The notes: generated by a model from the sequence alone, not told the origin. A DNA stretch of 56,002 nt from Paraphysomonas bandaiensis (GCA_965644295.1 CBFFRP010000260.1:1-56002); one strand, 5' to 3'; numbered from the stretch's first letter, positions 26,033 to 50,709 are shown. Program-made: numbers and translations.

Positions 26033-28236
26033 TCATATGGAGACATCCATCCTTGCCACGTCCGAGTTGGCATTCGTCGCACAATGTAACATGCAGTTTG
26101 ATAAGCATCAAACCAGTACGACTTTGGAAGTCCAGATGCCGTCAACATCGTCAGTGTCATCTCCCCAATTGTTCGGAATTTCCTCTCAGACACCGCGTTG
26201 AGCTCTGGCGTGTCTCGTGTTGTATGTGACACCCGAGTCCCATATCGCTGCAACAGATACTCTCTTATTTGCTGACTAATAAGTTCGGATCCTCCATCGG
26301 CATGATACTCCACTATACGGTTCCACCCCTCGTACTTCACTAAGTGGACCTCGCACAAGTGTCGTAGACATTTGAACACCTCCTCTCCGCTTCGAGTCCT
26401 CAATCCATATTCCCATATCATCTTTGTTGCTAAGTCCGTAAATAGGAGCACGTACTTATACCCTTGTCTGGATTCACAATTGAGATAGACGGAGATGTCC
26501 GCTGTTACTCTTTCCAGGAACCTGACTGCGCTTAGCTCTTCGTTGTCCCGTGATTTGAACGAATGCCTGGTTATCTTCGCCTTGGCACACCATTTACACA
26601 GGGGTTTCTTGCAACTCTTCTCCTTTGCCTTCGAAAGGTGATGTCGTTGTAGTCCTGATCCTCTGAATAACATGTGTCGGTGAGCTTCTATTAACTTCGA
26701 TTTCGAGACATGTCCAGTACGCTCATGTAAGCGATCCAACGCATCTTGTCCTGTATTATCCGACAAATTTACCTCCTCCATCTGATTGCACATAGACACA
26801 TTTGGCAGATTTAACACCTCCATCAAGTCCACATACGGCATTCCTCCATGCTCATCGTACTCTCCAGTCAACACCTCGTTTCCAGAGTCCAATTCCACGA
26901 TTTTAGGCTTTCGAAGCAGTTGTAATCCGTATCCCATTGATCTCAGCATTCCTCCTGACACAATGTTCTTCACCGCTTCTTCACTAACTCTGATGTCTCT
27001 CCATTCCCCGAATGTACCAGTTCCCTGTGTCTCCAATTGAGAACCCTTTCTAGTTAGTTGGATTGCCCCAAACTCAGGAGTAAATGACTCCAGTGCAATT
27101 TTATCCTTTACTATAAACAGTCTTTTACTTGCACAACTGTCCAGATATACACGAGGTTCTTCCGACGTATCCACCGATAGCAAAACCTCTTCTCCAAACA
27201 TATTCGCTTCATCATCCGACGACTCTCCGTCGTTGACGTATTTCTTCCATTCTGTCTCGAATTTCCTGTTCGATTTTCGAGGATTCTCATTATCCGGGTT
27301 TTTTATGTTCTTCCGTTTTTTCGACTTGCACTGTCGGGCTTTATGACTAAAATCTCCACAGATATGACAACCAGTATAATCCTTTGATCCTGGCTGCTGC
27401 ACACTCTTCGAAGCTTTTTCCTTTGTCTTCCCTTTTCTTTTGAACTTGTCCATTTTTCTTTGTCGTTCCTTAGCATAACAATTCGCTGCTACATGTCCCT
27501 TCTTCCGACAAAATGAACAAACCACTGGCTCCTTCGACGCCGTAAAATTGATCTCTTCAGATTTGTCTCCCTTTAGTTTCTTCAGCTGCGTCATAGCCTC
27601 GTCATACTCTTCACAAGCCTCTTTCACCGAATCAAATGTAGTTGTTGCTTTAGGCATCATCGCTACCGACATCCATAAATCATGTAATTCCTCTATCTGC
27701 AGCGCTGCTTTTATCTTTGCTAATTTACTTGCCTCTGTCTGCGGTTGTCCCAATTTTATGAGCTTCTGGATTATACCGTTCAGTCGATCTACCCCAACAG
27801 ACACCTTTTCCCCCGGCCTTATTTTGAACGAATGGTATTCTGCCGTAGTCTTCTCCAATACAGTCCCAATCTCGCCTCTGAACCTATCAACCAGTGTCTG
27901 AAGGAGCTCACTGGATAACACCTCCTTAGCAGGATCATCAGCAGGTAAAATTGCCTTCCCCTCCAAATATTGATTGGCTACCTCCAACACATCAGGGTCA
28001 TGCTCGCAAGCCTCCCAAATAGTACTAACACAGGTATCATTACGCTCTCTCCATGACTCTAAATTCCTTCCTCCGGCTGGCGGGTCCTCCAAGCCAAGAT
28101 GGTTTCGGTTTTTCTTCATTAGATGCATCTTGATTTTTCTCGCTGAATAGTCTGCTTGGTTCTTGTCAAACCGTAGCTTCTTGTCATCTTCCCCATCCCT
28201 ACAACTACCATCCGCTACCATAACAGAAGTTGACAT
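25963..28236 (-). CDS. Copia gag-protease-integrase part of the polyprotein
   Basis: CCHC knuckles CSFCRKKGHVAANC and CHICGDFSHKARQC; protease YLDSCAS; GAG-pre-integrase LHERTGH..CKWC; integrase HADGGSE..NAVSERKFRT. Confidence 0.9.
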   Translation of the reverse strand: MSTSVMVADGSCRDGEDDKKLRFDKNQADYSARKIKMHLMKKNRNHLGLEDPPAGGRNLESWRERNDTCVSTIWEACEHDPDVLEVANQYLEGKAILPADDPAKEVLSSELLQTLVDRFRGEIGTVLEKTTAEYHSFKIRPGEKVSVGVDRLNGIIQKLIKLGQPQTEASKLAKIKAALQIEELHDLWMSVAMMPKATTTFDSVKEACEEYDEAMTQLKKLKGDKSEEINFTASKEPVVCSFCRKKGHVAANCYAKERQRKMDKFKRKGKTKEKASKSVQQPGSKDYTGCHICGDFSHKARQCKSKKRKNIKNPDNENPRKSNRKFETEWKKYVNDGESSDDEANMFGEEVLLSVDTSEEPRVYLDSCASKRLFIVKDKIALESFTPEFGAIQLTRKGSQLETQGTGTFGEWRDIRVSEEAVKNIVSGGMLRSMGYGLQLLRKPKIVELDSGNEVLTGEYDEHGGMPYVDLMEVLNLPNVSMCNQMEEVNLSDNTGQDALDRLHERTGHVSKSKLIEAHRHMLFRGSGLQRHHLSKAKEKSCKKPLCKWCAKAKITRHSFKSRDNEELSAVRFLERVTADISVYLNCESRQGYKYVLLFTDLATKMIWEYGLRTRSGEEVFKCLRHLCEVHLVKYEGWNRIVEYHADGGSELISQQIREYLLQRYGTRVSHTTRDTPELNAVSERKFRTIGEMTLTMLTASGLPKSYWFDAYQTACYIVRRMPTRTWQGWMSPYECVPGGAFPAYRGYGNGGAKHMC

Positions 28237-29209: not shown

Positions 29210-32200
29210 CTATGCAAAGTTTTCCGATGTAAATTCAATGTCGACATGACTTGGAACATAAACATTTCTAAGAGCTTTGTTAATATCAGTAATTATCTCC
29301 GACCGTGTTGAACATACACATATTTTAGCTCTGTAAATTCCATCCGCACAGCACAATTCAGCAAAACTATTAATGTACGAACTCCACACGGGGCGCCCTT
29401 TCTTCAGGATACGGGTCATAAATTTCTTGTTCTCAACAATGCTTCGCAGCTCTTCATCATGCTCATAAGCAGAGTCTGACTTCATAAACTGCACCACATC
29501 TTCGTCGAAATCTCGTGTCACATGAACAGCAGCTTTAATTCGTGTTGAGAAACTTGTTGTCATGGCCTCCCGAAGCTCATCCATCACCCAAGTTATCTCA
29601 TGCATATGACCCGTTGACCACACAAACCAAACTTTGATATTTCTCGACCGAGTATTATCTTTTATATCTTGTATCACGGATAACGCTCCAGCAATACCCG
29701 TGCCTGTACCAATCAACATGACACAGTCATAGCCACGCCAATCCTGGAACGAAGAGGCAAAAGGTCCCATAATATCCAAGTTGTTCAAACTGTTCTCCAT
29801 GATAACCTCCTTCAATCTTTCAGTCCACCCATTCTTCTCCACTTTAATCAGAAGACCCAAAGTATCAACGTTACCATGTTGAATTGGCCCTGATGCAATG
29901 GAGAAAGGATGCCATTCCAAATGAGAGAGCTGTGCACACCTCATATAAACTATTTGTCCAGCTTTGAAGGTAAATCTCCCTTGTGTTTCAAGTCGTAGCT
30001 TTATAGCCATCGTTTCTGGATTCATAGGAGTCGGATATATACAATCTTTGTCAATTCGTTGAATATTGAACCACGATATCAATTTATCCATTGCATATAT
30101 CAACCAGAATGGAAAAGCGGAATAAAACACTTCAAAACGACTAAAAAATGCTCCAAAGGCAACAGCGTTTGCACCCAGTACATGAGTGTATAGAAAAATT
30201 TCAAAACTGTTGGGTGTAATCCACGTTCTCCAAATGTCTGAATTGAAAGGAAATTTATCGCCACCGATATTCAGTAAAGGGTACTTCAAAGCCGAGCTAG
30301 AAAGCATCATTAAGAGAGTTGTGACAATGACAATGCGTAGAAAAAGTACGGCTCCAGGGTTACCCGATGAGTCGAATACACATGACTCATAGTCATATAC
30401 TTCATCTCGAAACTTCGAATGTTGCTGGTCATTAATATCGTCTGCGCTGCAAAACCACACCGGGCCACGGATATCAAAAAATGACCCACTGGGAAGAAAC
30501 GCTCGACATTCATTTTCTTCACCATACTCTGCACACGAGAAGTACATCGCGACCCACCATACAAGAGCGCCAATATACAAGCCAACGCAAAGTGAGTAAC
30601 CTAAAAAGCGGTGAATGGCATATAAGTGATGAAAATGCAAAAGGTTTGCAAAAAAATTTCTGGTTGAATATTGACTATCTAGATTCGTCATCCAACTAAT
30701 CAGCTGGCGACACATCGTCAGCGGAAGTAACATAAATACCACCAAACATACGTGCATTATGCCGTACAGTACCGGAATCAAATGATCTTGAATCGGGCGA
30801 TCATTTAAATTGTACTGTGGACCTAGGCCAAGGTATGTTTGGTCATTGAGACTCGACGAATTTGTAACTAATGCACAAATTCCTCCGACCAACAGAGCAA
30901 CAGACATGGCAGCAATGGCCGTATTCTCATAATTGTTGTGCTTTCCTGTATAAACAAGAGCCGGATATATCACAAGTAGCATCACAACAAGCACAGCCCA
31001 TCTATTGTATGACGATGTAGACTGGCCAATATGCAATGCACACAGAAAGAATCTGTAGGAGCAATATCCCACAAGTACACTTGGAGCAACGAATGATACA
31101 TCAGACACAATTCTAATAAATTTGACTGCTTTAGAAAACAAAAGCGTGACTAGCCCCTTTGTCCGCGCAGGAGGCATTGGAGAAACATCAGGCTCCCCTA
31201 AAATCGAATATACCGGTTCAATTTGACAAGGATCAACAGTACCGGGCATACAAATATCTACTATATCCAATGTCCGAATTACTTCTCTGTTGCTAATATC
31301 TGTAAAAAGAGGGCAACACTGTGATCCTATCGTTATTTCTCCACTCTGGAAAAAACGACTCACATGATGATTGAAAAATGTCGTTAGCGAGACTCCATTC
31401 ATATCAAGTTGATAATGTAATTGGTCATCTTGTTTAGATGCTTCCCAGGGTGCAAGTTTAACCAAGAAACCAGTTATATCATCTCTCCATGACGCTGCCA
31501 CGACTGCCTTCTTTATACATAGACCATCATGGAGTTCATCCTCCAAAAATATATTCATGGCACTGCTCCACCAATCGTTGCTTCGTAGTTCATCTACTTC
31601 CTTGTACATATTACAGCCATGTTGAGCCTTCCAACGGTTAACCAGGTGTTCAAAGTTATAAACCATATTATCTGCATCGTTGTTTTCACATGATAAATCA
31701 TGAGCAGTCTGAATGTATACGGGAACAAATAGTTCACACAAAAGCTGAAGTAGCACATTATCCTCTTCGATGCATGCCTCGGTGCTATGTCCACTCACGC
31801 GCCCATCCGCTAAGCGAACTCGACTAGTAATCGAAATGTCAATTTGTTTTATGCGTGAAGCGATGAGGTCAAATACACATTGGACAGGCCGAGCCACGCA
31901 ACCACGTATCGCTCTCGCAATGATGTCACCCCCTACTTGCAAGCACAATGCACAAGCAAGACCTCGAATGTGAACCCTTCTGTTCCTGGTTGTCCATCGT
32001 TCAACGTCGTTTCTATGACACCTATACCAGCCATATATACTGTATGTATGTGTCACGATGTCATCAACACATTTCAAAAGCGGTCTGCTGACAATGGTTT
32101 CACTTGAATTTGGTGAAGGGATGGAATTAGTGATACCATCAGGAGATTCAGTAACCGTTGATAAGGGCGTTGTCGCGTTATTATTGTACCATGACAGAAT

Positions 32201-35200
32201 AGCTTTAGTCTGTGTCTTTAAATTGCCTAATTCGACTGAGCAATTTCGGAATATCACCACATCGGATATATTGCAACCGACAACAAACAAAGATATCATT
32301 GTCACCAAATCTCTCCAAAAATTTCCTTCTTGTGACGAGCAAAATTTTGAATAATTATACACGACAATGAATAAATCTATAATATCTGTACTAAATGCGA
32401 AGAAGAGAGATACCTTGACAGATTCAAACCGTTTATTGACCTCCAAGATGAAACTATCAGCACGACCCCTCAAATCGTTTTCATCCACAATATTTAACTT
32501 GCGAATAATGCTTTCACTTTTATCATCATCTAATATACCTTGAACAACATACCACCACTCCTCCAAACAATACCCCGCATTAAAAGCGGACAATGGAGAA
32601 AACGTAAACGAATTTGTGAAAACTGTACAGTACACCAGTGGCAACATATTAAAAAACAACGCAAAAGAATATATCTGCGTATCCGTTTGGTCTTTTTTTA
32701 GGGAAATTAACAGATTAATAAAACACAGTACCATGTCAAATATTTCAAAAACCAATACTCTCCAAAGAAATAAGTACGACCAAGGTGGAGGTGACAAGCC
32801 TTTAAACTGAGAGCGTATAATACAGTCAACAAAAACAACCAGCACAGCAACAATGACGGCTCCAATTGCATGGCCTGAAGCACGCGGTGCACAGAGCGGG
32901 CCATCACGAGGATTTTGAAAGACAACAGGCTCAAATTTATCAGAATCTGCACTTGACACTGCTACTCTTCGAATTAAATGATTGTATGAGTCACAAACCA
33001 GAACGAACGATTCATTGGTGGATAGTGACACACCCATAGGGCCATTAAACAACGCGTTGGTACCAAATCCATCAGCATCACCGCTAGTGTTAGTCCCTGC
33101 AATTGTTTCAACAATAAGACTGCTCATAAATACTTTCCTGATGGCATTGTTCCCAAAGTCGGCGACAATCAAAACACCATTGTGCTTAGTCAACACAACT
33201 GATGTCGGAAAAGAGAACAGAGATGATGTACCTATTCCATTTACAAGGCCCTTGACACCAGTCGTACCTACTAGTGTTGTAACTAAACCGCTTTTCAATT
33301 CTAACTTTCTTATGGTGTGGCTCCCATAGTCTGCAATGAACGCCAGAGAGTCATCTGATGACATTGAGGTTACATATGGGACGTTATATTGTGCGGTTGT
33401 TCCTATTCCATCCTCAGATCCCACGGCACCACCGGATATAGTACTCACATTCCCAGAAGAAAGCATATACTTCCGAATGTTGTAATTTCCACTGTCACTA
33501 ATAAGGGCATAAGTGTCATCGGATGATAGCACTATCGAATTTGGAACAGAGAATGAAGCAGATTCTCCAACTGCAATAACTATTTTGTTGGTGGTAAAAT
33601 CCAAAACTTTGATTGATCGGTCACCAATATCTGTATATAGTCCAAAACTGCTGTCTGAAGATATTGCAAAAGAAAACGCACTATTGAATTGACCACGTCC
33701 CTCAGAAGTGGATGTAATTTCAGTTGAGAATAAAACAGTGGTTACCTCTCCAGTCGACAATACTAGTTTTCGAATCGCGCTTTTCTCACAAATAATAGCA
33801 AATGAACTGTCAGGTGATAAGACAACATGAGAAGGATGGTCAAACGATGCATCCGATCCAACACCATCAATAGTAGCAGGTATCCCAGTACCTGCTACTG
33901 TTGAAACAGCAAAGGGTACTGAAGGTGTCAATGTTGGCAAAGAGCTTGGAGTGTCTATTTTAGATATGTATGTGGGACCCGGAGATGGAAGCTGACATTC
34001 ATGAATTTCACTTTGTGACAGATAAAACTTTGTTAGAAATCCCAGACTACATAATGCCGTGGGATATCGGTGAGTGTGAAAAAGATTGTCTTGTAGTTGC
34101 AACTCATGTAAGGAAGTCATCTTCGACAATGTTTCTGGAACAGTTCCAGTGAAAAAATTGCCCTGAAGCTGCAACAACCTGATGCCATATAAGTCTCCAA
34201 TTTGTAGTGGAATTTGCCCAGTCAAACTGTTTAATCCCAAATTTAATTGAGTGAGGTATCGCATGCTTCCAATGGAGTGTGGTAGTGTACCTGCTATTCC
34301 TTCCAATTTCAACTTAATGGCGACTACAGGCCCATCATTGCTGACGCAATCAATGCCCACCCAGTTACCATAACATTTATCGCCTATTCTTGCACACGAC
34401 CAACCCAGTTGGTGTACGTTAGTTGAACTTATAAAGTCACAAATAGCAGCGTTTTCGACGTCTACATAAGCCGTCGAGGACATTGATGGAACACCTGATG
34501 GAATAAAAGTAGGACGTGAAGTTGGCACTTCGCACTCATGCACGGCACTTTGTGAAAGATAAAAGGTTGTAAGCGAAGTCGAATCACAAAGTTCGGAGGG
34601 GTATATATGTTGAAGATTATTGTCCTGTATCTGTAGCTCACGTAGATGCACCAAAGACGCCAACGAGGAAGGAACAGTGCCCGAAAGTAGATTAGACTGA
34701 AGACGAAGTCCAACCAGGCTGTTCATGTTTCCGATACTCATTGGCAGAGAGCCGCGGAAGAAATTGTCGTTCAAATAGAGCAGTGAGAGTCTGGAAAGTG
34801 CGGTAATAGTCTCTGGAATAGTACCTGCAATACCATAACCGGCTAGAGAAATCTCATTGATAAATCCATCAACACAATCAATCCCAGTCCATCCTCCAAC
34901 TGTACACCTATCATTCATAGACTCCTGAGTGCAGTTCCAACCTGTTACATCCTTTGTAGTCACATCAGTGACATCGATAAAATCACATAAGAATGAAATC
35001 TCAAGGGAGTCATAAGTAGATTGTGCCACAGTCGGAATCCCTGTCCAATATGATACAAATCAGAAACTCTTCAGCATAATATACATGCCATTTTCAACAA
35101 CTTACCAGTTGGTGGATCTGATGTTGCTGCACTAGTATGCCATACATCTCTCCTGAAGCCATTTCCATCATGACCACCAATAACCCAGATCTTGTTATCG

Positions 35201-38200
35201 TAAACAACGCTGGTATGACCATGTCGAGCATCCCATGAAATCATGGCAGATACCTCCACCCATTTGGAGCCATCGGTAGTATACCACATATCATTCTTAT
35301 TGTTTCCATCATTTCCACCCATAATCCAAATATTAGAGTCATATACTACGCTGGTGTGTACATGTCGAGCACTCCATCCCTCACCATTGATTGTTACCTT
35401 CGTCCAGTGCGAGCCATCAGTGGTATACCACACATCATCCTTATAATTGTCTCCGTCCCAACCACCCATAATCCATATCTTCTGATCAAACACTACACTG
35501 CTAAGAAATTCTCGACCACCCCATGTTTCACTAGAAACAGCTTCCACCCACGCGGAACCGTCTGAAGTGTACCATACATCATTCTTCTGGTGACCTACAT
35601 ATGAATAACCCCCCATTATCCATATTTTATTGTCGTATACAACACCGGCAAAATGATATCGAACAGACCATATATTACTGGTAGTGACCTCTGTCCATGT
35701 TGAACCATCAGAGGAGAACCAAATGTCATTCCGGAGGCTATCAGAATCATGGCCACCCATGATCCACATTTTATTGTCATAAACGACACTGACGTGCCAG
35801 TGCCGACCAGACCATGCAGCAGTGGTAGAAGCCGCTGTCCATTCTGAGCCATCAGTAGAATACCACACATCATTATTATAGTCTCCATTATATCCACCCA
35901 TCACCCATATCTTATTTTGATATGCAACACTCGTGTGGCCAGTTCGAGCACTCCATGCAGCAGCAATAGTGGCCTCCGTCCATAACGAAGTTGTTGATTG
36001 ACTGGTTGGATGAATAGTTGGTGGATTGGTTGAATGAACAGTTGGTTGACCGGTTGGATGAACAGTTGGTTGAATGGTTGGATGAATAGTTGGTTGACTG
36101 GTCGGATGAATAGTTGGTTGCAATGTAGGCATGGAGGTAGGAGCCACAGTAGTATGCCATACATCTCTCCTGAAGCCATTTCCATCATGACCACCAATAA
36201 CCCAGATCTTGTTATCGTAAACAACGCTGGTATGACCATGTCGAGCATCCCATGAAATCATGGCAGATACCTCCACCCATTTGGAGCCATCGGTAGTATA
36301 CCACATATCATTCTTATTGTTTCCATCATTTCCACCCATAATCCAAATATTAGAGTCATATACTACGCTGGTGTGTACATGTCGAGCACTCCATCCCTCA
36401 CCATTGATTGTTACCTTCGTCCAGTGCGAGCCATCAGTGGTATACCACACATCATCCTTATAATTGTCTCCGTCCCAACCACCCATAATCCATATCTTCT
36501 GATCAAACACTACACTGCTAAGAAATTCTCGACCACCCCATGTTTCACTAGAAACAGCTTCCACCCACGCGGAACCGTCTGAAGTGTACCATACATCATT
36601 CTTCTGGTGACCTACATATGAATAACCCCCCATTATCCATATTTTATTGTCGTATACAACACCGGCAAAATGATATCGAACAGACCATATATTACTGGTA
36701 GTGACCTCTGTCCATGTTGAACCATCAGAGGAGAACCAAATGTCATTCCGGAGGCTATCAGAATCATGGCCACCCATGATCCACATTTTATTGTCATAAA
36801 CGACACTGACGTGCCAGTGCCGACCAGACCATGCAGCAGTGGTAGAAGCCGCTGTCCATTCTGAGCCATCAGTAGAATACCACACATCATTATTATAGTC
36901 TCCATTATATCCACCCATCACCCATATCTTATTTTGATATGCAACACTCGTGTGGCCAGTTCGAGCACTCCATGCAGCAGCAATAGTGGCCTCCGTCCAT
37001 AACGAAGTTGTTGATTGACTGGTTGGATGAATAGTTGGTGGATTGGTTGAATGAACAGTTGGTTGACCGGTTGGATGAACAGTTGGTTGAATGGTTGGAT
37101 GAATAGTTGGTTGACTGGTCGGATGAATAGTTGGTTGCAATGTAGGCATGGAGGTAGGAGCCACAGTAGTATGCCATACATCTCTCCTGAAGCCATTTCC
37201 ATCATGACCACCAATAACCCAGATCTTGTTATCGTAAACAACGCTGGTATGACCATGTCGAGCATCCCATGAAATCATGGCAGATACCTCCACCCATTTG
37301 GAGCCATCGGTAGTATACCACATATCATTCTTATTGTTTCCATCATTTCCACCCATAATCCAAATATTAGAGTCATATACTACGCTGGTGTGTACATGTC
37401 GAGCACTCCATCCCTCACCATTGATTGTTACCTTCGTCCAGTGCGAGCCATCAGTGGTATACCACACATCATCCTTATAATTGTCTCCGTCCCAACCACC
37501 CATAATCCATATCTTCTGATCAAACACTACACTGCTAAGAAATTCTCGACCACCCCATGTTTCACTAGAAACAGCTTCCACCCACGCGGAACCGTCTGAA
37601 GTGTACCATACATCATTCTTCTGGTGACCTACATATGAATAACCCCCCATTATCCATATTTTATTGTCGTATACAACACCGGCAAAATGATATCGAACAG
37701 ACCATATATTACTGGTAGTGACCTCTGTCCATGTTGAACCATCAGAGGAGAACCAAATGTCATTCCGGAGGCTATCAGAATCATGGCCACCCATGATCCA
37801 CATTTTATTGTCATAAACGACACTGACGTGCCAGTGCCGACCAGACCATGCAGCAGTGGTAGAAGCCGCTGTCCATTCTGAGCCATCAGTAGAATACCAC
37901 ACATCATTATTATAGTTTCCATCATATCCACCCATCACCCATATCTTATTTTGATATGCAACACTCGTGTGACCAGTTCGAGCACTCCATGCAGCAGCAA
38001 TAGTGGCCTCCGTCCATAACGAAGTTGTTGATTGACTGGTTGGATGAATAGTTGACAGTACATCGATAGCCTCAGCAGAACCAGCAAGAAGAAGAATGAG
38101 GCTTGAGATGTATCTATTTCTGACTGACACACCAGAGTGAAGGCTTACCACACACACAACATAATAGAGAAGTAAAAGGGCACAGTAAGCGATACAAGAT

Positions 38201-38319
38201 CCATAGTCTGTAAGCTGTAGTGGGCTGTGCACAGAGGGCGTATCATCCCATATAGAGTTCCCAGTACAGAAGAGATGGGGGACAACAGCAGGAAGTATTG
38301 GTTTCAATATCGTTTGCAT
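29210..38319 (-). CDS. Giant receptor-like membrane protein: Kelch x3 + LRR x2 + NHL propeller + TM segments + NADPH oxidase/ferric reductase module (join 38319-35106, 35040-29210; ~3014 aa)
   Basis: A 65-nt phase-1 intron (GTAAG at 35105 to CAG at 35041) joins the 1082-aa and 1939-aa ORFs in frame. C-terminal EWHPFSIASG, GWTERL, MGPF, LIGTGTGIA, WFVWS, GRPVW, SENFA. LRR LxLxxNxLSGTVP; NHL-type FNGPMGV/VADFGNNAIRK; Kelch-type KIWIMGG..NDVW. Confidence 0.85.
35133..38054 (-). repeat. ~2.9 tandem copies of a 1017-bp unit (six Kelch-like blades + PT stalk)
   Basis: Exact 1017-bp periodicity; only a few substitutions, in the 5'-most unit (YDGNY vs YNGDY). Confidence 0.95.
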
Positions 38320-38653
38320 TGCGACTTCTATAATCGTCCAAAGCCTATAAGGTCAAAGCTAGCTATAAGCATAGGCGATAACACACACATATCTTGGTGA
38401 GACTGCCGTACAGAGCCCGCCCGTTTGCACAACCACCCCCAGAATACACACATTATCACGTATATAAAAACGGGGGGTTGTACGGAACTAAAAAATGAGG
38501 GGGGACAGCCGCAATTTTTCATAACGAACGGCCTGTATGACATCACTAGTAAAGTGGTATCTTTTTTTGTTCTGTGTGTCATCACAATAAAGTGAAGTCA
38601 CATCTGCTGCATATACATACACTTCACTTCACTTCTATATACACATATATAAG

Positions 38654-39328
38654 ATGGATGATATTATTACAGCTGCTCGTGTGGGTGATATCAATGCAGT
38701 GAGGAGGTGTGTTAGGAGGGGTGGTAACATCAATGAACAAGATGAGGTACACACATACATACTCATATATACATACATACATAGAGTGTTATGGCTCATA
38801 TGTGATTATTATTATTGTTTTATAGAGGGGTCGTACAGCTCTTCACTTGGCTGCCTCCCATGGTCACAGAGATATAGCTGAGTATCTTATAAGAGAAGGA
38901 GCAGATACAACTATACGAGACAATGTAAGTAACCCCTCGATACATACATACATACATACATACATACATACATACATACATACATACATACATACATACA
39001 TACATACATACATACATACATACATACATACATACATACATACATACATACATACATACATACATACATACATACATACATACATACATACATACATACA
39101 TACATACATACATACATACATACATACATACATACATACATACATACATACATACATACATACATACATACAAACATACATACATACATACATACATACA
39201 TACATACATACATACATACATACATACATACATACATACATACATACATACATACATACATACATACATACATACATACATACATACATACATACATACA
39301 TACATACATACATACATACATACATACA

Positions 39329-39362
<34 letters not shown>

Positions 39363-39732
39363 CATACATACATACATACATACATACATACATACATACA
39401 TACATACATACATACATACATACATACATACATACATACATACATACATACATACATACATACATACATACATACATACATACATACATACATACATACA
39501 TACATACATACATACATACATACATACATACATACATACATACATACATACATACATACATACATACATACAAACATACATACATACATACATACATACA
39601 TACATACATACATACATACATACATACATACATACATACATACATACATACATACATACATACATACATACATACATACATACATACATACATACATACA
39701 TACATACATACAAACATACATACATACATACA

Positions 39733-39766
<34 letters not shown>

Positions 39767-40288
39767 CATACATACATACATACATACATACATACATACA
39801 TACATACATACATACATACATACATACATACAAACATACATACTTACATACACACATACATACTCATATATACATACATACTTACAGTGTTATGGCGGCT
39901 CATATGTGATTATTCTTATTGTTTTATAGGGGGGTTATACAGCTCTTCACTGGGCTGCCTCTGGAGGTCACAGAGATACAGCTGACTATCTTATAAGAGC
40001 AGGAGCAGATATCACTATACGAAACAATGTAAGTAACCCCTCCATACAGACATACATACATACACACATACATACATACATAGAGTGTTATGAGGCTATA
40101 TGTGATTATTGTTGTTGTTTTATAGAGGGGTCGTACAGCTCTTCACGAGGCTAGCTCTAGAGGTCACAGAGATATAGCTGAGTATCTTATACGAGCAGGA
40201 GCAGATACAACTATACGAGACAATGTAAGTAATCCCTCAATACATACATACATACATACATACATACATACATACATACATACATACA

Positions 40289-40322
<34 letters not shown>

Positions 40323-43300
40323 CATACATACATACACACATACATACATACATACGTACATAGAGTGTTATGAGGCTATATGTGATTATTGTTGTTGTTT
40401 TATAGAGGGGTCGTACAGCTCTTCACGAGGCTAGCTCTAGAGGTCACAGAGATATAGCTGAGATTCTTATAAGAGAAGGAGCAGATATAACTATACGAGA
40501 CAATGTAAGTAACCCCTCCATACAGACATACATACACACACACATTACATACTCATATATAGTGTGTTATGAGGGCTCATATGTGATTATTGCTATTGTT
40601 TTATAGGGTGATCGTACAGCTCTTCACGAGGCTAGCTCTAATGGTCACAAGGATATAGCTGAGATTCTTATAAGAGAAGGAGCAGATATAAGCATACGAG
40701 ATGATGTAAGTAACCCCTCGATACATGGATACATACACACACATTACATACTCATGTATATAGTGTTATGAGGGCTCATGTGATTATTGTTATTGTTTTA
40801 TAGGAAGGTCGTACAGCTCTTCACGTGGCTGCCTCAAGAGGTCACTGGGATATAGCTGAGCATCTTATAAGAGCAGGAGCAGATATCACTATACGAGACA
40901 ATGTAAGTAACCCCCTCGATACATACATATATGCATACATACAGTGTTATGAGGGCTCATATGTGTATACTGTTATTGTTTTATAGGATGGTCGTACAGC
41001 TCTTCACGAGGCTACCTCTAATGGTCACAGGGATATAGCTGAGTATCTTATAAGATCAGGAGCAGATATCACTATACGTGACAATGTAAGTAACCCCTCT
41101 CATACATACATACACACACACATACATACACATATATAGTGTGTTATGAGGGCTCATGTGATTATTGTTATTGTTTTATAGGGTGATCGTACATCTCTTC
41201 ACTATGCTGCCTTTGGAGGTGACAGAGATACAGCTGAGTATCTTATTACAGCAGGAGCAGATATAAACATACGAGACACTGTACGTAACCCTCGATACGT
41301 ACATACATATATACATACATACAGTGTTATGAGGCTCATATGTGATTATTGTTATTGTTTTATAGGGGGGTCGTACAGCTCTTCACGATGCTGCCTCTAG
41401 AGGTCACAGAGATACAGCTGAGTATCTTATTAGAGCAGGAGCAGATATCACCATTGGAGACACTGTAAGTAACCCCTCGATACATACATATACACATACA
41501 TACAGTGTTATGAGGGCTCATATGTTATTGTCGTTATTGTTTTATAGGGGGGTCGTACAGCTCTTCACGATGCTGCCTCAAGAGGTCACAGAGATATATC
41601 TGAGTATCTTATAAGAGAAGGAGCAGATATAAACATACGAGACACTGTAAGTAACACCTCTATACATACATACATACATACATACATACATACATACATA
41701 CAGTGTTATAGGGCTCATATGTGTATACTGTTATTGTTTTATAGGATGGTCGTACAGCTCTTCACTGGGCTACCTCTAATGGTCACAGAGATATAGCTGA
41801 GTATCTTATAATATCAGGAGCAGATACAACTATACGAGACAATGTAAGTAACCCCCTCGATACATACATACATACATACACACATACTTACATAGAGTGT
41901 TATGAGGGCTCATATGTGATTATTGTTATTGTTTTATAGGGTGGTCGTACAGCTCTTCACTATGCTGCCTTTGGAGGTGACAGAGATACAGCTGAGTATC
42001 TTATAAGAGAAGGAGCAGATATAAACATACGAGACAATGTAAGTAACCCCTCGATACATACATATATACATACATACAGTGTTATGAGGCTCATATGTGA
42101 ATATTGTTGTTGTTTTATAGAGGGGTCGTACAGCTCTTCACGAGGCTGCCTCTAATGGTCACAGAGTTATCGCTGAGAATCTTATAAGAGAAGGAGCAGA
42201 TATAAGCATACGAGATACTGTAAGTAATCCCTCGATACATGGATACATACATACATACATACATACATACATACATACATACATACGTGTTATGAGGCTC
42301 ATATGTGATTATTATTATTGTTTTATAGGAAGGTCGTACAGCTCTTTACGAGGCTACCTCTAATGGTCACAGAGATATAGCTGAGTATCTTATAAGATCA
42401 GGAGCAGATATCACTATACGTGACAATGTAAGTAACCCCTCGATACATACATATATACAGAGTTATGAGGACTCATATGTTATTGTCGTTATTGTTTTAT
42501 AGGATGGTCGTACAGCTCTTCACTGGGCTACCTCTAATGGTCACAGGGATATAGCTGAGTATCTTATAAGAGAAGGAGCAGATATAACTCTAAGAACCAA
42601 TGTAAGTAACCCCTCGATACATACATACATACGTACATACATACATACAGTGTTATGAGGGCTCATATGTGAATATTGTTGTTGTTTTATAGGAAGGTCG
42701 TACAGCTCTTTACGAGGCTACCTCTAATGGTCACAGAGATATAGCTGAGTATCTTATAAGATCAGGAGCAGATATCACTATACGTGACAATGTAAGTAAC
42801 CCCTCGATACATACATATATACAGAGTTATGAGGACTCATATGTTATTGTCGTTATTGTTTTATAGGATGGTCGTACAGCTCTTCACTGGGCTACCTCTA
42901 ATGGTCACAGGGATATAGCTGAGTATCTTATAAGAGAAGGAGCAGATATAACTCTAAGAACCAATGTAAGTAACCCCTCGATACATACATACATACGTAC
43001 ATACATACATACAGTGTTATGAGGGCTCATATGTGAATATTGTTGTTGTTTTATAGAGGGGTCGTACAGCTCTTCACGAGGCTGCTTCTAATGGTCACAG
43101 AGTTATCGCTGAGTATCTTATAAGAGAAGGAGCAGATATAAACATACGAGATACTGTAAGTAATCCCTCGATACATAGATACATACGTGTTATGAGGGCT
43201 CATATGTGATTATTATTATTGTTTTATAGGAAGGTCGTACAGCTCTTTACGAGGCTACCTGTAATGGTCACAGAGATATGTCTGAGTATCTTATAAGATC

Positions 43301-44467
43301 AGGAGCAGATATCACTGCTGGAGACAATGTAAGTAACCCCTCGATACATACATATATACAGAGTTATGAGGACTCATATGTTATTGTTGTTATTGTTTTA
43401 TAGGATGGTCGTACAGCTCTTCACTGGGCTCTCATTAGAGGTCACAGGGATATAGCTGAGTATCTTATAAGAGAAGGAGCAGATATAACTCTAAGAACCA
43501 ATGTAAGTAACCCCTCTCATACATACATACATACACACACATACGTACTCATGTATAGAGTGTTATGAGGGCTCATATGTGATTATTGTTATTGTTCTAT
43601 AGTTGGGTTGTACTGCTCTTCACTATGCTGCCTTTGGAAGTGACAGAGATACAGCTGAGTATCTTATAAGAGAAGGAGCAGATATAAACATACGAGACAA
43701 TGTAAGTAACCCCTTCATACATACATAGAGTGTTATGAGGTCTCATATGTGATTATTGTTATTGTTTTATAGAGGGGCCATACAGCTATTCACTGTGCTG
43801 CCCTTTTTGGTCACAGAGATATAGCTGAGTATCTTATAAGAGCAGGAGCAGATATCACTATACGAGATAATGTAAGTAACCCCTCTATACATACAAACAT
43901 ATATACATATATATTGAAAGTCTTTTTATTTAGCAATAGGCGTTAAAAACTCATACATGTATACATACATACATACATACATACATACATACATACATAC
44001 ATACATACAGAGTGTCATGAGGGCTCATATGTGTATACTGTTATTGTTTTATAGAGGGGTCGTACAGCTCTTCACGAGGCTGCCTCTAATGGTCGCAGAG
44101 ATATATCTGAGTATCTTATAAGAGCAGGAGCAGATATCACTATACGAGACAATGTAAGTAACCCGTCGATATATGCATATTATATTTACTTCACTGACTC
44201 GTTAATGTAAAGATGATATGGATAAGTGGCGATGCACTGTGTCACTTCTTTTTATGATGTTTATTGTCGTTTTCGCAGGAGGGAAGGACTCCTGTTGATG
44301 TGGCTAGAGATGATGCGATGCGTGATATCATCACAAATGCACATGTGAGTATGTGTATTGTATGCTTCATCTTATTCATAGAACCAGAGATATGACCTCA
44401 CTGGAATCATATGTGGATTGTATAGGCTGAGAGGCAGAGAACTCAACCAAGAGACCACGATGGATGA
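38654..44467 (+). CDS. Multi-exon ankyrin repeat protein (~825 aa): N-cap exon, 23 single-repeat 99-bp exons, C-cap exon, short tail exon
   Basis: Exon 1 is 38654-38746. The 99-bp AG/GT-bounded exons start at 38826, 39930, 40126, 40406, 40607, 40804, 40987, 41182, 41366, 41548, 41745, 41940, 42121, 42329, 42503, 42693, 42867, 43057, 43230, 43404, 43603, 43773, 44055 (consensus [33 protein letters not shown], no stops). C-cap 44279-44344 [18 protein letters not shown]; probable last exon 44426-44467. Confidence 0.93.
38940..39850. repeat. (TACA)n microsatellite, ~0.9 kb, inside intron 2 of the ankyrin gene
   Basis: Nearly pure tetranucleotide array with rare CAAA/TATA variants. Confidence 0.98.
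43912..43952 (-). mobile_element. 41-bp LINE 3'-end micro-insertion in ankyrin intron 23
   Basis: TATTGAAAGTCTTTTTATTTAGCAATAGGCGTTAAAAACTC matches the terminus at 45135; possible TSD ATACATATA/ATACATGTA. Confidence 0.75.
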
Positions 44468-44633
44468 CTTAGAGGTCTACGGAGTTTCCCCCGATTATGT
44501 TGCATATTGACACCAGTGTAATCCACAATCCATGATTGCACTTGTGGGTTCTACCCTCAGTAGAACTATTTTACATGTATTCACCTATACTCGTACATCC
44601 ATGTTTCCGAAATGATTATTTCATTGAGGAGAG

Positions 44634-45134
44634 TATTAAGATTCATTTACTTACGGATATCTCTTAACTTGTGAATGCAACAAAATAATACAATGAAATA
44701 TCAATTGACTGAATAATTACCTGACTATATAAGATACAAGACACGCTAATGTGTGATTGGTTTTAATGCTCTATTCTACCGTATCTAATGTGGAGTTTTA
44801 TTATTATAATCAATCTTTACCATCTCTTGAGTTCTATTAGGATTCAGCTTAATATAAGGCAGTAACTATGAGTTATAATGTTCAATGAAATATATCATGA
44901 ACTGAATTAGTGAGAGTATCTGTTGAAGGTACATGATCGTCATCATAATGATCGTAATTATCAGTTATACTTCTAACTATTCGCTCCGTTGTGCATGACA
45001 GTTATGTTCTATATTGTTGTTAGGATTCAGCTCAATACAAGATAGTATCTGTGAGTTATAACGCTCAACGTAATATATCATGAACTGAATTAGAGAGAGT
45101 ACCTGTTGAAGATACATGATCGTCATCATAGTAT
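44634..45134 (+). repeat. Cluster of LTR-like fragments, including two tandem partial copies (44835, 45018) of the repeat at 12159
   Basis: Shared TTAGGATTCAGCT..AATATATCATGAACTGAATTAG..ACATGATCGTCATCATA; PPT-like GAGGAGAG before 44634. Confidence 0.55.
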
Positions 45135-46254
45135 TATTGAAGGTCTTTTTATTTAGCAATAGGCGTTAAAAACTCGTTCCGATATAGTGGCTAGTCTACT
45201 AGCTAGACCTCAACCCATAACTAATCAGCACAAATTCTATTATCCTACTATTTAGCGCTACAGAAGCTGCTTGTGCGTCGCCGCAAGCACCAAGGCGCAA
45301 CCACTTCCGTTCTCAATGTGGTTTGTGACAGGGATAGGGAACAATATATTGTATTGCAATATATTGTACAATATATTGATTGGTGGACTGGTCAAAGATT
45401 CCATCAATAGTGTTTCTGTTAATAGAGCTCACAATACTATTGCAATATATTGCAATCAATATTATGATAGTCATATAAGAGAAGATCCTTAACTGTATGG
45501 TGCAAAATATACGCCTCTGTATACAAATATCCGGAAAATAAGAAAAAAAGCCTATTTTTGATGTTATTTTCTATTTTTTACATACACATGCATGCGTTTG
45601 CTGCAAATTAACGACAAATCTTGATATATGCTAAATTTCACCTAATCTTATAGTTCAGTACAGTACCATCTAGTTCTCATTATTGCTTGCGCATGTAACA
45701 GAAAAGCAATAACTGTACCCCAATGAATGAACTGATTATTACTCAACAGCCCAATAGTACTCCAGCTGCACACTCTACTACTCTAGTCTCTAGTACCAAT
45801 ACTTATTACCTGACACTAGCCGGGAGTCTCTGGAGCTTAAAGCCATTTCTGATACATTATTTCTCTTTTTACCACGACTGAGAGCATTGCTCAGTAAGTC
45901 GAGCATATCCACTACCTCACCTGCATGGTCTTCTTTTTCCATTTCAAACACGGTTTCATGCTGTAAATCAGCACATGAATCAACGACGTACTCGGACTGA
46001 ACTTTCACTGCGCATTTCAAATGCTTTACTCCCCTCCAATCTAATAGGCATTCTGCTTGCTTGCGTCATCTTGAATAACCTCGAGACATACACTCTCCGC
46101 TTTTCTACAGGTCACGGGAACCCACTTGTCACGCTCATTTTGTCGATAATGAGGCATAAACCTTCACAATAGCTCTCCCGCATAGTAATGAAGCTTGCTA
46201 TACGAACTCACAGTTAATAATGGCACGATTCACAGTGTGTTCGCTCTCTCAATC

Positions 46255-47501: not shown

Positions 47502-48843
47502 TTAAGAGTAGTGGGTTTGATTATCAAGTGACCTTAGACCTTATAAAATATGGTAAGTACTAAAAATGAAAACTACGGATGTGTTTACTTACTGATTGGT
47601 CATACTAATATATTGCAATATATTGTACAATATATTGCAATAGTATTGTAGGGCCGGTTTAAAAAATCCATCAATACTATTGATGGAACGCTACCTAACA
47701 ATAGTATTGCAATATATTGTTCCCTATCCCTGGTTTGTGAGTTCGCCCTGCTCGTGTGTCTGAGGACTCACTGGCGCGTGTTGTCCGGGGGTCTCCCCTT
47801 GGGATAAGGTTCCGCCTGGCTCTGAGGTACAGGGTTCTGTATTAAGGTCCTGAGTGTACCGAGCACTAGATGTGTGTACTGAGCGGTTGATGGTGTGGTG
47901 GAATGTGGCGGTGTCGACATGCACCGTCTGGGCGTTGGGCATAGGTGGAGTTGCCGGAGACGTCGTCGCCGTTGTCTAGGGCCTGTTGGTTTCATACGGT
48001 CCGGTGCTATGGTCCTTTGTGTATGGTTGGTAGGGTTCATATGTGCGGTGGGCGGTGTTCCAGTCTAGGTTCGTCTGTGGATTCCTATAGTAATCTTAGC
48101 ACCCTTGGGCGTTTCCGTTTCTGTCTGCGTTTTGGACGCGGCCGCGGTAGTAGCCTTTGGGGACCTTTCTGTAGGGTGACGCATCTTCTACTTCGATCTT
48201 GGATCATTAGCTTTGCTGCAGCGAAAAGCGGTAGAAGTAATTTGATGATCGCTGATTCGATGCTGCGCAGTCCTTGGGATGTCAGTGACTCATGGATGTG
48301 ATCTCCAAAAACCATTTCAAGCTGTGTAGTTGTGATGGTACCCGTCCAGAATCTCTCCACCTGTGGCAAGGAAGGGTTCCAGGCCCTGCTGGAGAGTCGC
48401 TGGAGTACAGTGGTGGTCCATTGGGGTAGTTCCGGATTTCTCATTTCTTCTAGAAGCGCGTTTTTGTGGCTGTGAAATGCAGACTCCCTTATCTGCGTTA
48501 TGGTGTCATTTGTACAGTCTAGACACATATGCTTGAGTGAGTCTAGTCTAAATCCGCAGTCAGAACATGCGGCTTTAGCCATGTCGAGTCCGTGTTTGAA
48601 TTTTCGCCTGGTTTCTTCCTATGCTGAAGGATTTGTCCCATGTCAGTGCTGCATTGAGTACTCGCTGGCGCAGGTGGGAACTCACTTTGTCCTTTGATGG
48701 TCCACCATCTGCTTGCGCTAGTTTGCGCGGAAGTAGTGCTCCGCTGTCTTTCCAGTATTCAGGAGCCCGGTCAGGATTGTGACCGTAGCGTTGGTCTCGG
48801 AGAGCTGTGTAGGCCTCCAGCGCCCGTTGCAAACGCTCTCCGA

Positions 48844-50709
48844 TGCAGCAACTCCAGCTCGTCCTCACCAGTCCTATCGCTAAGATTTACTTCACAATTA
48901 CTCGGTGTAGACACATCTGGAAGCTCCAACAGCTGCTGAGTTGGAACTGCAGTCATTCCATTCTTCATGGGTCCCTCCAGTACCAGTTCACCAGTATTAC
49001 AGTCATAAATTTGGATCCCATACCACACCGTGAATCGATAGCCCATTTCGTTCAGCTTACGTCCGGAGCACAGGCATCGATTGATCGGATCTGAAATTTC
49101 TATGTCTCTCCATGCTCCACGGGAACCCACACTTGTGATATGAATCTCTGATCCCTTCTTAGAGCCGTTTATCACCTTTGATGTATTCACATGAGTGTCA
49201 AGCATGGTCACATCATTCATCAAGAACATTGATGATGAACAGCAGGTGTCAATATATGTATAATGCATGTCATCATTTACACTACATATATTCGTTTCAT
49301 GTATATTGCATGACAATTTCATAACATCCTCGATCATATTTGCTTCATCTTCATCAGAGAAATCTGCTGGTTCTCCACGCCGTATATTCTCTACTGTCAG
49401 CAGCCTTTTGTCCGGCTTCCTACCATGATTCTTCCCTTTCTCTCCTCTTCTAGAATGCTTTTTCTTCGTCGTTGGACAATCAGCAGCAAGATGTTCCAGA
49501 GACTTGCAATTTCTGCATCCCGTATACTCAGCACTTCCAGGACGCTGCCCTGATATCTCTCCATCCTTCTTCCTCTGCTTCCTCCTGCACTGTTCAGTTG
49601 AATGACTATGAGGAATTCCTTCTTTCCTGCAATATCTACAATTGCCCTTCTTACGCTTATCCCGTTCTGTTCGAGACCGTTTGCTCTTTTCAATGAAATT
49701 CAGCTCCTCCACCTTCTTGCGTTTCCGCTCTAACGCAATCCTTCCAGGAATGGTATCATCATACCGTTCTATCTTCCTTGATAATGTTGCATAATCAACA
49801 TCATCAGGCATCAAATACAAAGCAACATTCAGAGGAGCATATTCTTCATTCAACAGACCTTCTCGTAACCGTGTTATTTTTGAGAGCTCCGATATGTCCT
49901 GCTGCTGCTCCTGTAGCTCTTTCAGCAGTATTTCAAACCGTATTATATAGTCCTTCGCAGTCTCCTCCGGACGCATACGGAAAGATCCATACTGAGTCAA
50001 CAGCTCACTGATCTTGTTTTGCTTCCCTCCAGCAAAGCACTTCTTCAACTCATCAATCATAATATGCGCCTTAAACCTGTTGCTTCCTCTTCCATCAGTC
50101 TTGAACCCTTTATGTAGAAGATGGAATTTCTGAAGCGCCTTCGAAGATGATTGCACTGCCTCTCTACAGTACGAATACGCTATGGCATTCGCCTTCCAGT
50201 ACTTCTTCACAGCCTGTCTGTAAGACTTCTCCTCCATTAACGTGAGTGGCTGTTCCCCGAAGTCGCTTTCCTTCGGTGGTGGCTCCACCGCTACCTCACT
50301 TTGCTCTTTCCTCATGAGGAATGTTTCGAAGTCCTCAATCCATTGTTCAACGTTATTCTCGTTGAACTGAGGAACTACTCCTCTATCCTCCTTCTCTCCT
50401 CCTCGCTCGCTACCATGTTGAGAAACGCTCATTTTACACTAGATCACAGAGAGAATTTGTCGTAAGACTAGATAGATTTATTAATATCGTTTACACGAAG
50501 TTGTGATAACCAACACTAACTCAATATAATCCCTGCATAATATCCTACATATGCGAACCTCTCGTTACTGAACATATCTTGAAAGATCAAACTATTTCAG
50601 TTTTTCAATATCATCACAGCATTTGTACATCACTATATTTCACTGTATTCTCGTACATTGTCTTCAAGTGACATACTGAATATACTAGAATAAGATCCAT
50701 ATTCTAATA
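48844..50709 (-). mobile_element. 5' half of a Copia element: LTR (50416-50709), PBS, gag-protease ORF truncated at the LINE junction
   Basis: ORF 48771-50432 with zinc knuckles, YIDTCCSS and ELLHRR. PBS TGGTAGCGAGCG immediately after the LTR end (50415 downward). LTR homologous to 17756-18051. Confidence 0.85.

Follow-up and report, generated by a model that had tools for sequence, protein, structure and literature searches.

The leucine-rich repeat (LRR) and tetratricopeptide repeat (TPR) genes of Ectocarpus, ROCO-LRR and NB-ARC-TPR, encode one repeat per exon (PMC3341825; PMC11378527). Tetrahymena carries LRR gene arrays made of 90-bp exons (PMC6564038), and fungal NLRs (NOD-like receptors) possess highly internally conserved ANK, TPR or WD repeats (PMC4986451). 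Here, we describe an ankyrin gene at 38654-44467 of a 56,002-nucleotide stretch of Paraphysomonas bandaiensis DNA (GCA_965644295.1 CBFFRP010000260.1:1-56002), which we call the window. Its 23 ankyrin repeats are each encoded by a 99-bp phase-0 exon, between an N-cap and a C-cap exon. It is probably an expressed, spliced ankyrin-only gene whose arrays diversify in the germline, not via a dedicated combinatorial machine. Literature searches found no published description of this ankyrin exon-array family within the library searched.

The Ectocarpus genes resemble this locus in their stramenopile-type host, in giving each repeat one symmetric exon of fixed length, in the tandem duplication of exon plus intron, in diversifying selection on the ligand face and in forming a multigene family proposed as recognition receptors. 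However, the repeat is ankyrin (99 nt) here and LRR (72 nt) or TPR there, and our locus is without ROC-COR or NB-ARC and without a signalling or effector domain. Inactivated or reverse-strand orphan exons within introns, a hallmark of shuffling in Ectocarpus, were absent here (0 among 299 exon hits), and alternative splicing is reported there (PMC11378527) but unsupported here. The Tetrahymena arrays share exons of exactly one length (thousands there), tandem exon-plus-intron units, uniform introns, probable clonal expansion by unequal crossing-over and an association with repeat-rich regions. They differ in their LRRs, their phase-2 introns, which make the exons interlock, and their far larger scale, whereas our array has phase-0 introns filled with (ATAC)n. 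In fungal NLRs, too, ankyrin repeats are near-identical, vary in number and evolve in concert, the concave face (inner helix and hairpin) is under positive selection, and relatives swap effectors, including patatin-like and kinase types. Yet fungal repeats are not one per exon, and fungal NLRs have a NACHT/NB-ARC core with N-terminal effectors, whereas no NOD domain was seen here and the effectors of paralogues are C-terminal.

Among solved structures, a profile of the 23 exons best matched designed ankyrin repeat proteins (DARPins), consensus ankyrins and ankyrin-1/2. Like DARPins and consensus ankyrins (PDB 6mol, 5le2, 2qyj, 1n0r), the predicted protein has an N-cap, internal repeats on an identical framework and a C-cap, and its variable codons 1, 11, 12, 24, 31 and 33 align with DARPin library positions. 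DARPins, however, are man-made and intron-free and have two to three internal repeats; in the natural array, codons 8 and 10 (framework L and A in DARPins) are strongly variable, and codon 3 is hardly so in this gene. In vertebrate ankyrins, many repeats are encoded by single 99-bp exons. The membrane-binding domain of ankyrin-R/B/G (PDB 4rlv, 7tw3) is likewise a long solenoid, with 24 repeats that bind many targets via the inner groove, but its repeats and introns are ancient and dissimilar, tandem-unit turnover is absent, and large C-terminal spectrin-binding and death domains follow. Lastly, three paralogues (C71, C457 and C235) resemble tankyrase-type ANK-PARP proteins in having a PARP catalytic domain after the array. 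This locus is without PARP, no SAM domain was seen, and the likeness described is one of domain order.

Structure and transcription of the exon array

We read the region 38400-44800 and scanned it with the unit pattern AG + 99 nt + GTA[AC]GTAA. This returned exactly 23 units (38826-44153), all 99 nt long, open in frame 0 and free of indels, and an nhmmer exon profile recovered the identical 23 exons in the window, on the + strand only. All 23 ankyrin exons have AG/GT borders. The N-cap exon, 23 ankyrin exons, C-cap exon and last exon are separated by 25 introns, all in phase 0, and the predicted product, ankyrin-only, comprises 31 + 759 + 22 + 13 = 825 residues; no further domain was found within 38654-44467. 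The regularity of the array is far above chance, because Tandem Repeats Finder scored 2400-3600 (up to 3632) at periods 174, 197 and 364.

Contigs from sequencing runs were aligned to 40363-44520. X10, from a culture, behaves as RNA, and X13 is a polyA metatranscriptome; X5 and X8 contigs cross introns, and X5 and X8 are therefore DNA. GT..AG RNA joints were found at four predicted introns in X10 and/or X13, and the DNA contigs agreed with the assembled junctions wherever they overlapped. The gene is thus transcribed, and in culture as well as in the sea its transcript is spliced at these four introns as predicted. The features are as follows; every ankyrin exon was located by the pattern scan, with additional evidence given in brackets.

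38654-38746, +: N-cap exon (93 nt, 31 codons, donor GTACAC; 33 related N-cap copies in the genome)
38826-38924, +: ankyrin exon 1 (RGRTALHL..)
38940-39886, unstranded: (ATAC)237 microsatellite, filling intron 2 (38925-39929, 1005 nt)
39930-40028, +: ankyrin exon 2 (96% identity to an exon of paralogue C114)
40126-40224, +: ankyrin exon 3 (halves with different best partners; possible mosaic)
40406-40504, +: ankyrin exon 4
40607-40705, +: ankyrin exon 5
40804-40902, +: ankyrin exon 6
40987-41085, +: ankyrin exon 7 (possible mosaic of the 15/17 and 14/16 exon types)
41182-41280, +: ankyrin exon 8 (RNA joint 41280>41366, GT..AG, X10 and X13)
41366-41464, +: ankyrin exon 9 (RNA joint at start)
41548-41646, +: ankyrin exon 10
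41745-41843, +: ankyrin exon 11
41940-42038, +: ankyrin exon 12 (possible mosaic)
42121-42219, +: ankyrin exon 13 (97% identity to exon 18)
42329-42427, +: ankyrin exon 14
42503-42601, +: ankyrin exon 15
42329-43056, +: two-unit tandem duplicate, 364-bp blocks 42329-42692 and 42693-43056, 100% identical (exon 14-intron-exon 15-intron = exon 16-intron-exon 17-intron)
42693-42791, +: ankyrin exon 16 (identical to exon 14)
42867-42965, +: ankyrin exon 17 (identical to exon 15)
43057-43155, +: ankyrin exon 18
43230-43328, +: ankyrin exon 19 (RNA joint 43328>43404, GT..AG, X10)
43404-43502, +: ankyrin exon 20 (RNA joint at start)
43603-43701, +: ankyrin exon 21 (Pfam Ank)
43773-43871, +: ankyrin exon 22
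44055-44153, +: ankyrin exon 23 (RNA joint 44153>44279, GT..AG, X10 and X13)
44279-44344, +: C-cap exon (66 nt, 22 codons; RNA joints on both sides; ~29 related copies in the genome)
44426-44467, +: last coding exon (13 codons and TGA; a shortened charged linker exon; RNA joint 44344>44426, X10 and X13)
44433-44480, unstranded: left end of a dispersed repeat, which replaces the remaining linker exon and supplies the stop codon

Pfam Ank (PF00023) matched each 99-nt exon as one repeat in register (positions 1-33 of 33, E ~1e-10 to 1e-11). Exon 7, for example, scored 43.6 bits (E 2.6e-11, positions 1-33) and exon 21 scored 41.0 bits (E 1.7e-10, positions 2-33), against a cut-off of 21.1. The N-cap (31 aa) and C-cap (22 aa) exons alone gave no Pfam match; by eye they look like ankyrin capping helices (AARxGDxxxVRRxxxxGGNINxQD and GRTPVDVAR). 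The last 25 nt of the N-cap exon are unique in the assembly, even when one mismatch is allowed. A first, sequence-only reading had proposed 23 phase-0 exons of 99 bp between cap exons, each encoding one 33-aa repeat without a stop or indel; this was borne out by the pattern scan, nhmmer, the in-register Pfam matches and, at four introns, the RNA joints.

The same reading had described the introns as near-identical and the exons as a library of 23, and both descriptions hold in part. Intron ends are alike, with GTAAGTAACCCCTC at the start and GTGTTATGAGGGCTCATATGTGATTATTGTTATTGTTTTATAG at the end (86% identity across the first 16 nt and 88% across the last 46 nt), but the cores are (ATAC)n microsatellites of very different lengths, so that introns measure 71-183 nt, plus the one of 1005 nt (intron 2). 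The 23 exons encode 21 distinct peptides, since exons 14 and 16, and exons 15 and 17, are identical. Retained introns would introduce a stop or a frame shift. No competing long open reading frame (ORF) was present on either strand except microsatellite read-throughs, and an Rfam search of the whole window returned no RNA family.

Near-identical pieces of the gene occur in runs under at least four coded organism labels, as well as in marine metagenomes and metatranscriptomes. This spread would be consistent with a widespread flagellate, one that also finds its way into cultures of other organisms.

Turnover of units and selection on the binding face

Besides the perfect two-unit duplicate, exons 13-14-15 resemble exons 18-19-20 (97, 92 and 94% identity), and exons 7-8 resemble exons 11-12. 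The two halves of exons 3, 7, 12 and 23 have different best partners, and 34% of informative site pairs within the 99 nt were incompatible in the four-gamete test. Exons 2 and 3 have more in common with exons of paralogue C114 (96% identity) than with any exon of their own array. The mosaic exons point to gene conversion, and the arrays bear the signature of tandem unit duplication and loss together with such conversion. Mean exon identity is 84%, with a silent-site difference of 0.15, and intron ends are 86-88% identical; this similar divergence suggests that exons and introns were copied together and drift at about an equal rate.

Across the 23 exons, T4, A9, L21, I22, G25, A26 and D27 are invariant. 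The most variable codons within the gene are 8, 1, 12, 10, 24, 11 and 29, whereas codons 2 and 3 are not notably variable (entropy 0.43 and 0.77 bits) and codons 30-32 vary mildly. Family-wide, entropy peaks at codons 3, 8, 12, 1, 11, 33, 23 and 24, with codon 3 the most variable position. The positions picked out in the sequence-only reading were therefore right for codons 1, 8, 10-12 and 29, overstated for codons 2-3 and 30-32, and lacked codon 24.

We examined selection at each codon by a counting method on a tree of 287 exons. A nonsynonymous excess was found at codon 12 (ratio ~6, p 5e-7) and at codons 8 and 24 (p 0.0014), and a weaker one at codons 31, 11, 33 and 1 (p 0.005-0.014) and also at codon 15. 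Purifying selection was detected at codons 2, 4, 5, 7, 9, 14, 16, 21, 22, 26 and 28. By register against the DARPin and ankyrin chains of solved structures, on which our mapping of the binding face rests, DARPin library positions fall on codons 33, 1, 3, 11, 12 and 31, plus 24, and codon 8 sits on the inner helix; six of the eight nonsynonymous-excess sites coincide with library positions. The claim that variation concentrates on the canonical ankyrin binding face was thus upheld, by the excess at codons 12, 8 and 24 and the weaker excess at 31, 11, 33 and 1. The DARPin library was itself built on the surface positions at which natural ankyrin repeats vary. Because the library was taken from natural variability, overlap with it is expected in any diversifying ankyrin family and alone is no evidence of an immune-like system. 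What the site pattern indicates is a binding face that is diversifying, and it speaks for no biological role in particular.

Across the family, frame and stops are under strong constraint: among 244 variants, ~8.7 distinct stop-creating variants were expected and one was seen. Within this gene alone, the three codon positions have nearly the same identity (0.841, 0.829 and 0.859). Overall, inherited (germline) diversification of the binding face is supported.

Paralogous loci and the truncated 3' end

In the 62.6-Mb genome, the exon-plus-intron unit gave at least 449 matches on more than 30 contigs, and the family comprises at least 30 loci with more than 280 ankyrin exons of 99 nt. Of the paralogous arrays and orphan exons for which the sequence-only reading had suggested looking, only the arrays turned up: no opposite-strand or orphan exon occurred among 299 nhmmer exon hits in the window and 35 paralogous loci. 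Across these loci, 218 of 220 full-length exon hits are exactly 99 nt, open and AG/GT-flanked; of the two exceptions, one is 102 nt long and one has a stop. Arrays hold from 1 to 32 or more repeats, each subfamily has its own framework signature, and the donor-side and acceptor-side intron blocks are kept across the family. Searching 1.84 billion protein representatives with the profile of the 23 exons returned generic long ankyrin proteins, with the family signature in 0 of the 150 listed matches and hence neither a spliced product nor a foreign relative among them, and exact-pattern scans of metagenome contigs with the N-cap tail and an intron-exon junction gave no match. At C186:137400-149600 (L027, L047), ~7-8 short ankyrin-only family genes stand head to tail, ~1.2-2.3 kb apart, with ~3-8 repeats each and their own N-cap, C-cap and short tail.

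In most paralogues, similarity to the window stops at 44439-44440 (in one, at 44453), and AERQRQQEEAA..E followed by GTATG comes next. Here, a dispersed repeat takes over from ~44433, its first 48 nt being matched at 98% on at least 11 other contigs, and loose contig ends lie at 44433 in X5, X8 and X13. The repeat contributes the last nine codons and the stop, and no PARP, kinase or linker continuation was found elsewhere in the window. RNA contigs extend over the repeat-derived tail, indicating that the truncated form is the expressed form. Paralogue C571 has the identical repeat junction, but identity there is only ~88%, suggesting that the truncation is old, yet both copies retain intact exons. 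The linker exon of paralogue C114 contains a TAG. The 3' flank (44433-46200) is a nest of dispersed repeats. Its part 45580-46200 recurs at least 40 times at 96-100% identity (2704 first-look candidates), and a 41-nt fragment of a flank repeat (43912-43952) lies inside intron 23.

Other members are predicted to lead into enzymes. A PARP catalytic domain lies downstream on the same strand, after the charged linker exon, in C71 (L050:472-1155), C457 (L054:3685-4434) and C235 (L066:4048-4737), with E 1e-14 to 3e-13; the whole genome has only eight PARP matches, and these three are among them. They are predicted to be tankyrase-like ANK-PARP fusions built from the same cassette exons, and in C71 both acceptor and frame are compatible with a phase-0 junction to the PARP part. 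A protein-kinase domain lies downstream in C124, C640 and C483 (599-aa ORFs at L056:863-2659, L060:572-2368 and L063:694-2490) and in C138, C618 and C263 (~1003-aa ORFs at L064:903-3917, L067:268-3276 and L068:1358-4366), the longer ORFs having ~440 residues before and ~340 after the kinase without a Pfam match. C58 has a patatin-like phospholipase stretch downstream (L062:1795-2481) that scored 26.9 bits, just below the 27.7 cut-off. C5 and C186 have only a short tail after the array. No NACHT or NB-ARC was found in this gene, and none from Pfam in the paralogue ORFs scanned. The proposal of a pure binder with no effector domain therefore holds at this locus, owing to the dispersed repeat in its linker exon, but does not extend to the paralogues that lead into PARP, kinase or patatin-like domains. 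In L049, L051, L056, L058, L060 and L067, the charged linker exon and its intron are in turn repeated in tandem (2-5 times), as a second, smaller exon-plus-intron repeat system.

Rival accounts, neighbouring genes and meaning

In the account that we prefer, exon-plus-intron units of ~170-200 bp, each with (ATAC)n in its intron, would be gained and lost in tandem, probably by unequal recombination or replication slippage, and gene conversion among repeats would distribute variable patches. Selection would maintain the 99-nt frame, splice sites and repeat framework, and would favour new residues in the canonical groove for target binding, at the hairpin tip and on the inner helix. The product would most likely be a long solenoid with proteins as its targets. 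In paralogues, a similar array may serve as the recognition arm of a PARP, protein kinase or patatin-like lipase; here, the dispersed repeat has cut the locus in the linker exon, leaving an enzyme-free binder that might act as an adaptor, decoy or competitor. We infer the recombination mechanism, groove binding and any role in non-self recognition from these patterns.

Several observations weigh against this account. Nonsynonymous excess at surface codons appeared family-wide, as the sequence-only reading had anticipated, but within the gene pN/pS is ~1.04, and the lack of stops among 73 distinct within-gene variants is not significant (P = 0.16), so that relaxed constraint after truncation is possible at this locus taken alone. 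The site-wise p-values are approximate, coming from parsimony on a poorly resolved tree of recombining 99-nt sequences. The count of 23 exons, the perfect duplicate and the 947-bp microsatellite are known from the assembly only, and no contig or read spans the array. Finally, one RNA contig, in which the N-cap tail is followed by a D-type exon, misfits constitutive splicing in the assembled order.

That contig bears on the combinatorial exon library that the sequence-only reading had favoured, in which symmetric phase-0 exons would be skipped in subsets, giving many isoforms and a repertoire of binders from one gene. Every exon subset would indeed remain in frame, and the exon-per-repeat LRR arrays of Ectocarpus ROCO genes are reported to be alternatively spliced (PMC11378527). 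The left end of the X10 contig, TGGTAACATCAATGAACAAGATG, is the N-cap tail, and its fitting part starts at 42865 with AG and a D-type exon (exon 17), not exon 1; the tail being unique in the assembly, the contig reflects either exon skipping from this gene or another exon order in that strain. X10 is labelled as organism B and the best DNA holders as organism A, and a strain-specific exon order fits the junction equally well, given the variation in repeat number. A second X10 contig (99 nt) joins an exon-5-like end to an exon-7-like body. Most other non-canonical joints, which seem to go back or skip, are, by the exon identity matrix, canonical neighbours placed on a near-identical exon (sides of 20-42 nt), and the rest bear foreign letters typical of paralogues. 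Within introns, a C-rich donor box can pair with a G-rich box before the likely branch point (mean duplex -7.6 versus -4.9 kcal/mol when shuffled), and such pairing across exons might help skipping, after the manner of the covarying docking and selector pairs of Dscam-like systems. However, the stem is small (5 bp), the branch-point region is conserved anyway, and covariation between the boxes was weak and inconsistent, with no clear and consistent compensatory change. The RNA evidence consists of short assembly contigs, from which isoform ratios cannot come. We regard a combinatorial library as unlikely. What stands of the proposed binder diversification is turnover of units at the DNA level, seen in the perfect duplicate, the higher-order blocks, the mosaics and arrays of 1 to >32 repeats; combinatorial exon skipping is unsupported, the contigs confirming canonical GT..AG splicing and almost all odd joints having another explanation.

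Rather improbable, in our judgement, is a decaying relic, in which the gene would have lost its effector when the repeat inserted into the linker exon and would persist as a transcribed, functionless remnant, looking intact because its repeats are young. The truncation at ~44433-44440 with no continuation in the window, the within-array pN/pS of ~1, the non-significant absence of stops, the TAG in the linker exon of C114 and the repeat fragment within intron 23 would all suit such decay. Yet the truncation is old by the C571 junction, and full-length exons are still open with AG/GT borders in 23 of 23 cases here and 8 of 8 in C571 (two more C571 matches are partial). There are 0 indels in 23 x 99 nt, whereas intron ends bear indels and intron lengths vary 14-fold (intron 2 included). 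The spliced transcript, repeat-derived tail included, appears in two independent RNA sets, and the C5 and C186 members are naturally ankyrin-only with a short tail.

More doubtful still is an immune-like cassette library. In it, the ankyrin binders would differ from cell to cell or clone to clone, through exon skipping or through frequent mitotic gain, loss or conversion of units, aided by the microsatellites in the introns and by the conserved intron boxes. Such a library and the paralogues linked to PARP, kinase and lipase would together make up a recognition system in a unicellular predator, and the N-cap-tail RNA junction would be its first trace. Lamprey VLR-type receptors are completed in somatic cells from cassettes that flank an incomplete germline gene; by way of comparison, the X5 and X8 DNA contigs match the assembled junctions at every overlap.

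A satellite-like mis-assembly or an introner-type mobile intron is very improbable: the 364-bp duplicate is perfect, short-read contigs span at most about one unit, and several family arrays lie on very short contigs or at contig ends, but independent DNA (X5, X8) and RNA (X10, X13) contigs match many junctions at 99-100%, exons and introns diverge in parallel, and we rejected the introner hypothesis because the 33-nt intron motif (at most three mismatches) is confined to ankyrin-array contigs (69 of 69 genomic matches, 0 in unrelated genes).

Other genes of the window are also repeat-rich. An intronless 1032-aa ORF at 13658-16756 (+) encodes an F-box followed by ~30 copies of a 29-residue ankyrin-like repeat (GHLDVLQWLRSQDPPCPW.., 87-bp period) and is a second, unrelated repeat-receptor-like gene. 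Upstream of the array gene, 29210-38319 (-) holds two long adjacent ORFs, one for a 1082-aa Kelch protein with three near-identical 1017-bp blocks and PT linkers, the other for a 1939-aa LRR + NHL + ferric-reductase/NADPH-oxidase-like protein. Two near-identical paralogous ORFs at 5124-6956 and 8640-10304 (+; 610 and 554 aa) have a GNPGIGKS P-loop-like motif and no Pfam match. A Copia-type retrotransposon with gag-protease-integrase-reverse transcriptase ORFs lies at 23639-28236 (-) and a second gag-like ORF at 48771-50432 (-), indicating that the region is transposon-rich.

The exon-per-repeat, tandem-copied design with a varied binding face has been proposed to underlie fast-evolving receptors in brown algae (LRR, TPR) and ciliates (LRR) and, in intronless form, in fungi (ANK, TPR, WD). 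The present family brings this design to ankyrin repeats in a marine protist, the same type of array being followed by one of several enzymes (PARP, kinase, patatin-like lipase) or by no enzyme. More modestly, what this locus adds is a member with 23 repeats that is transcribed and well preserved and has no effector. If the arrays recognise viruses, prey or other non-self, the family would represent a modular repertoire of sensors and effectors that arose independently and lacks a NOD core, and a natural counterpart of designed ankyrin binders.

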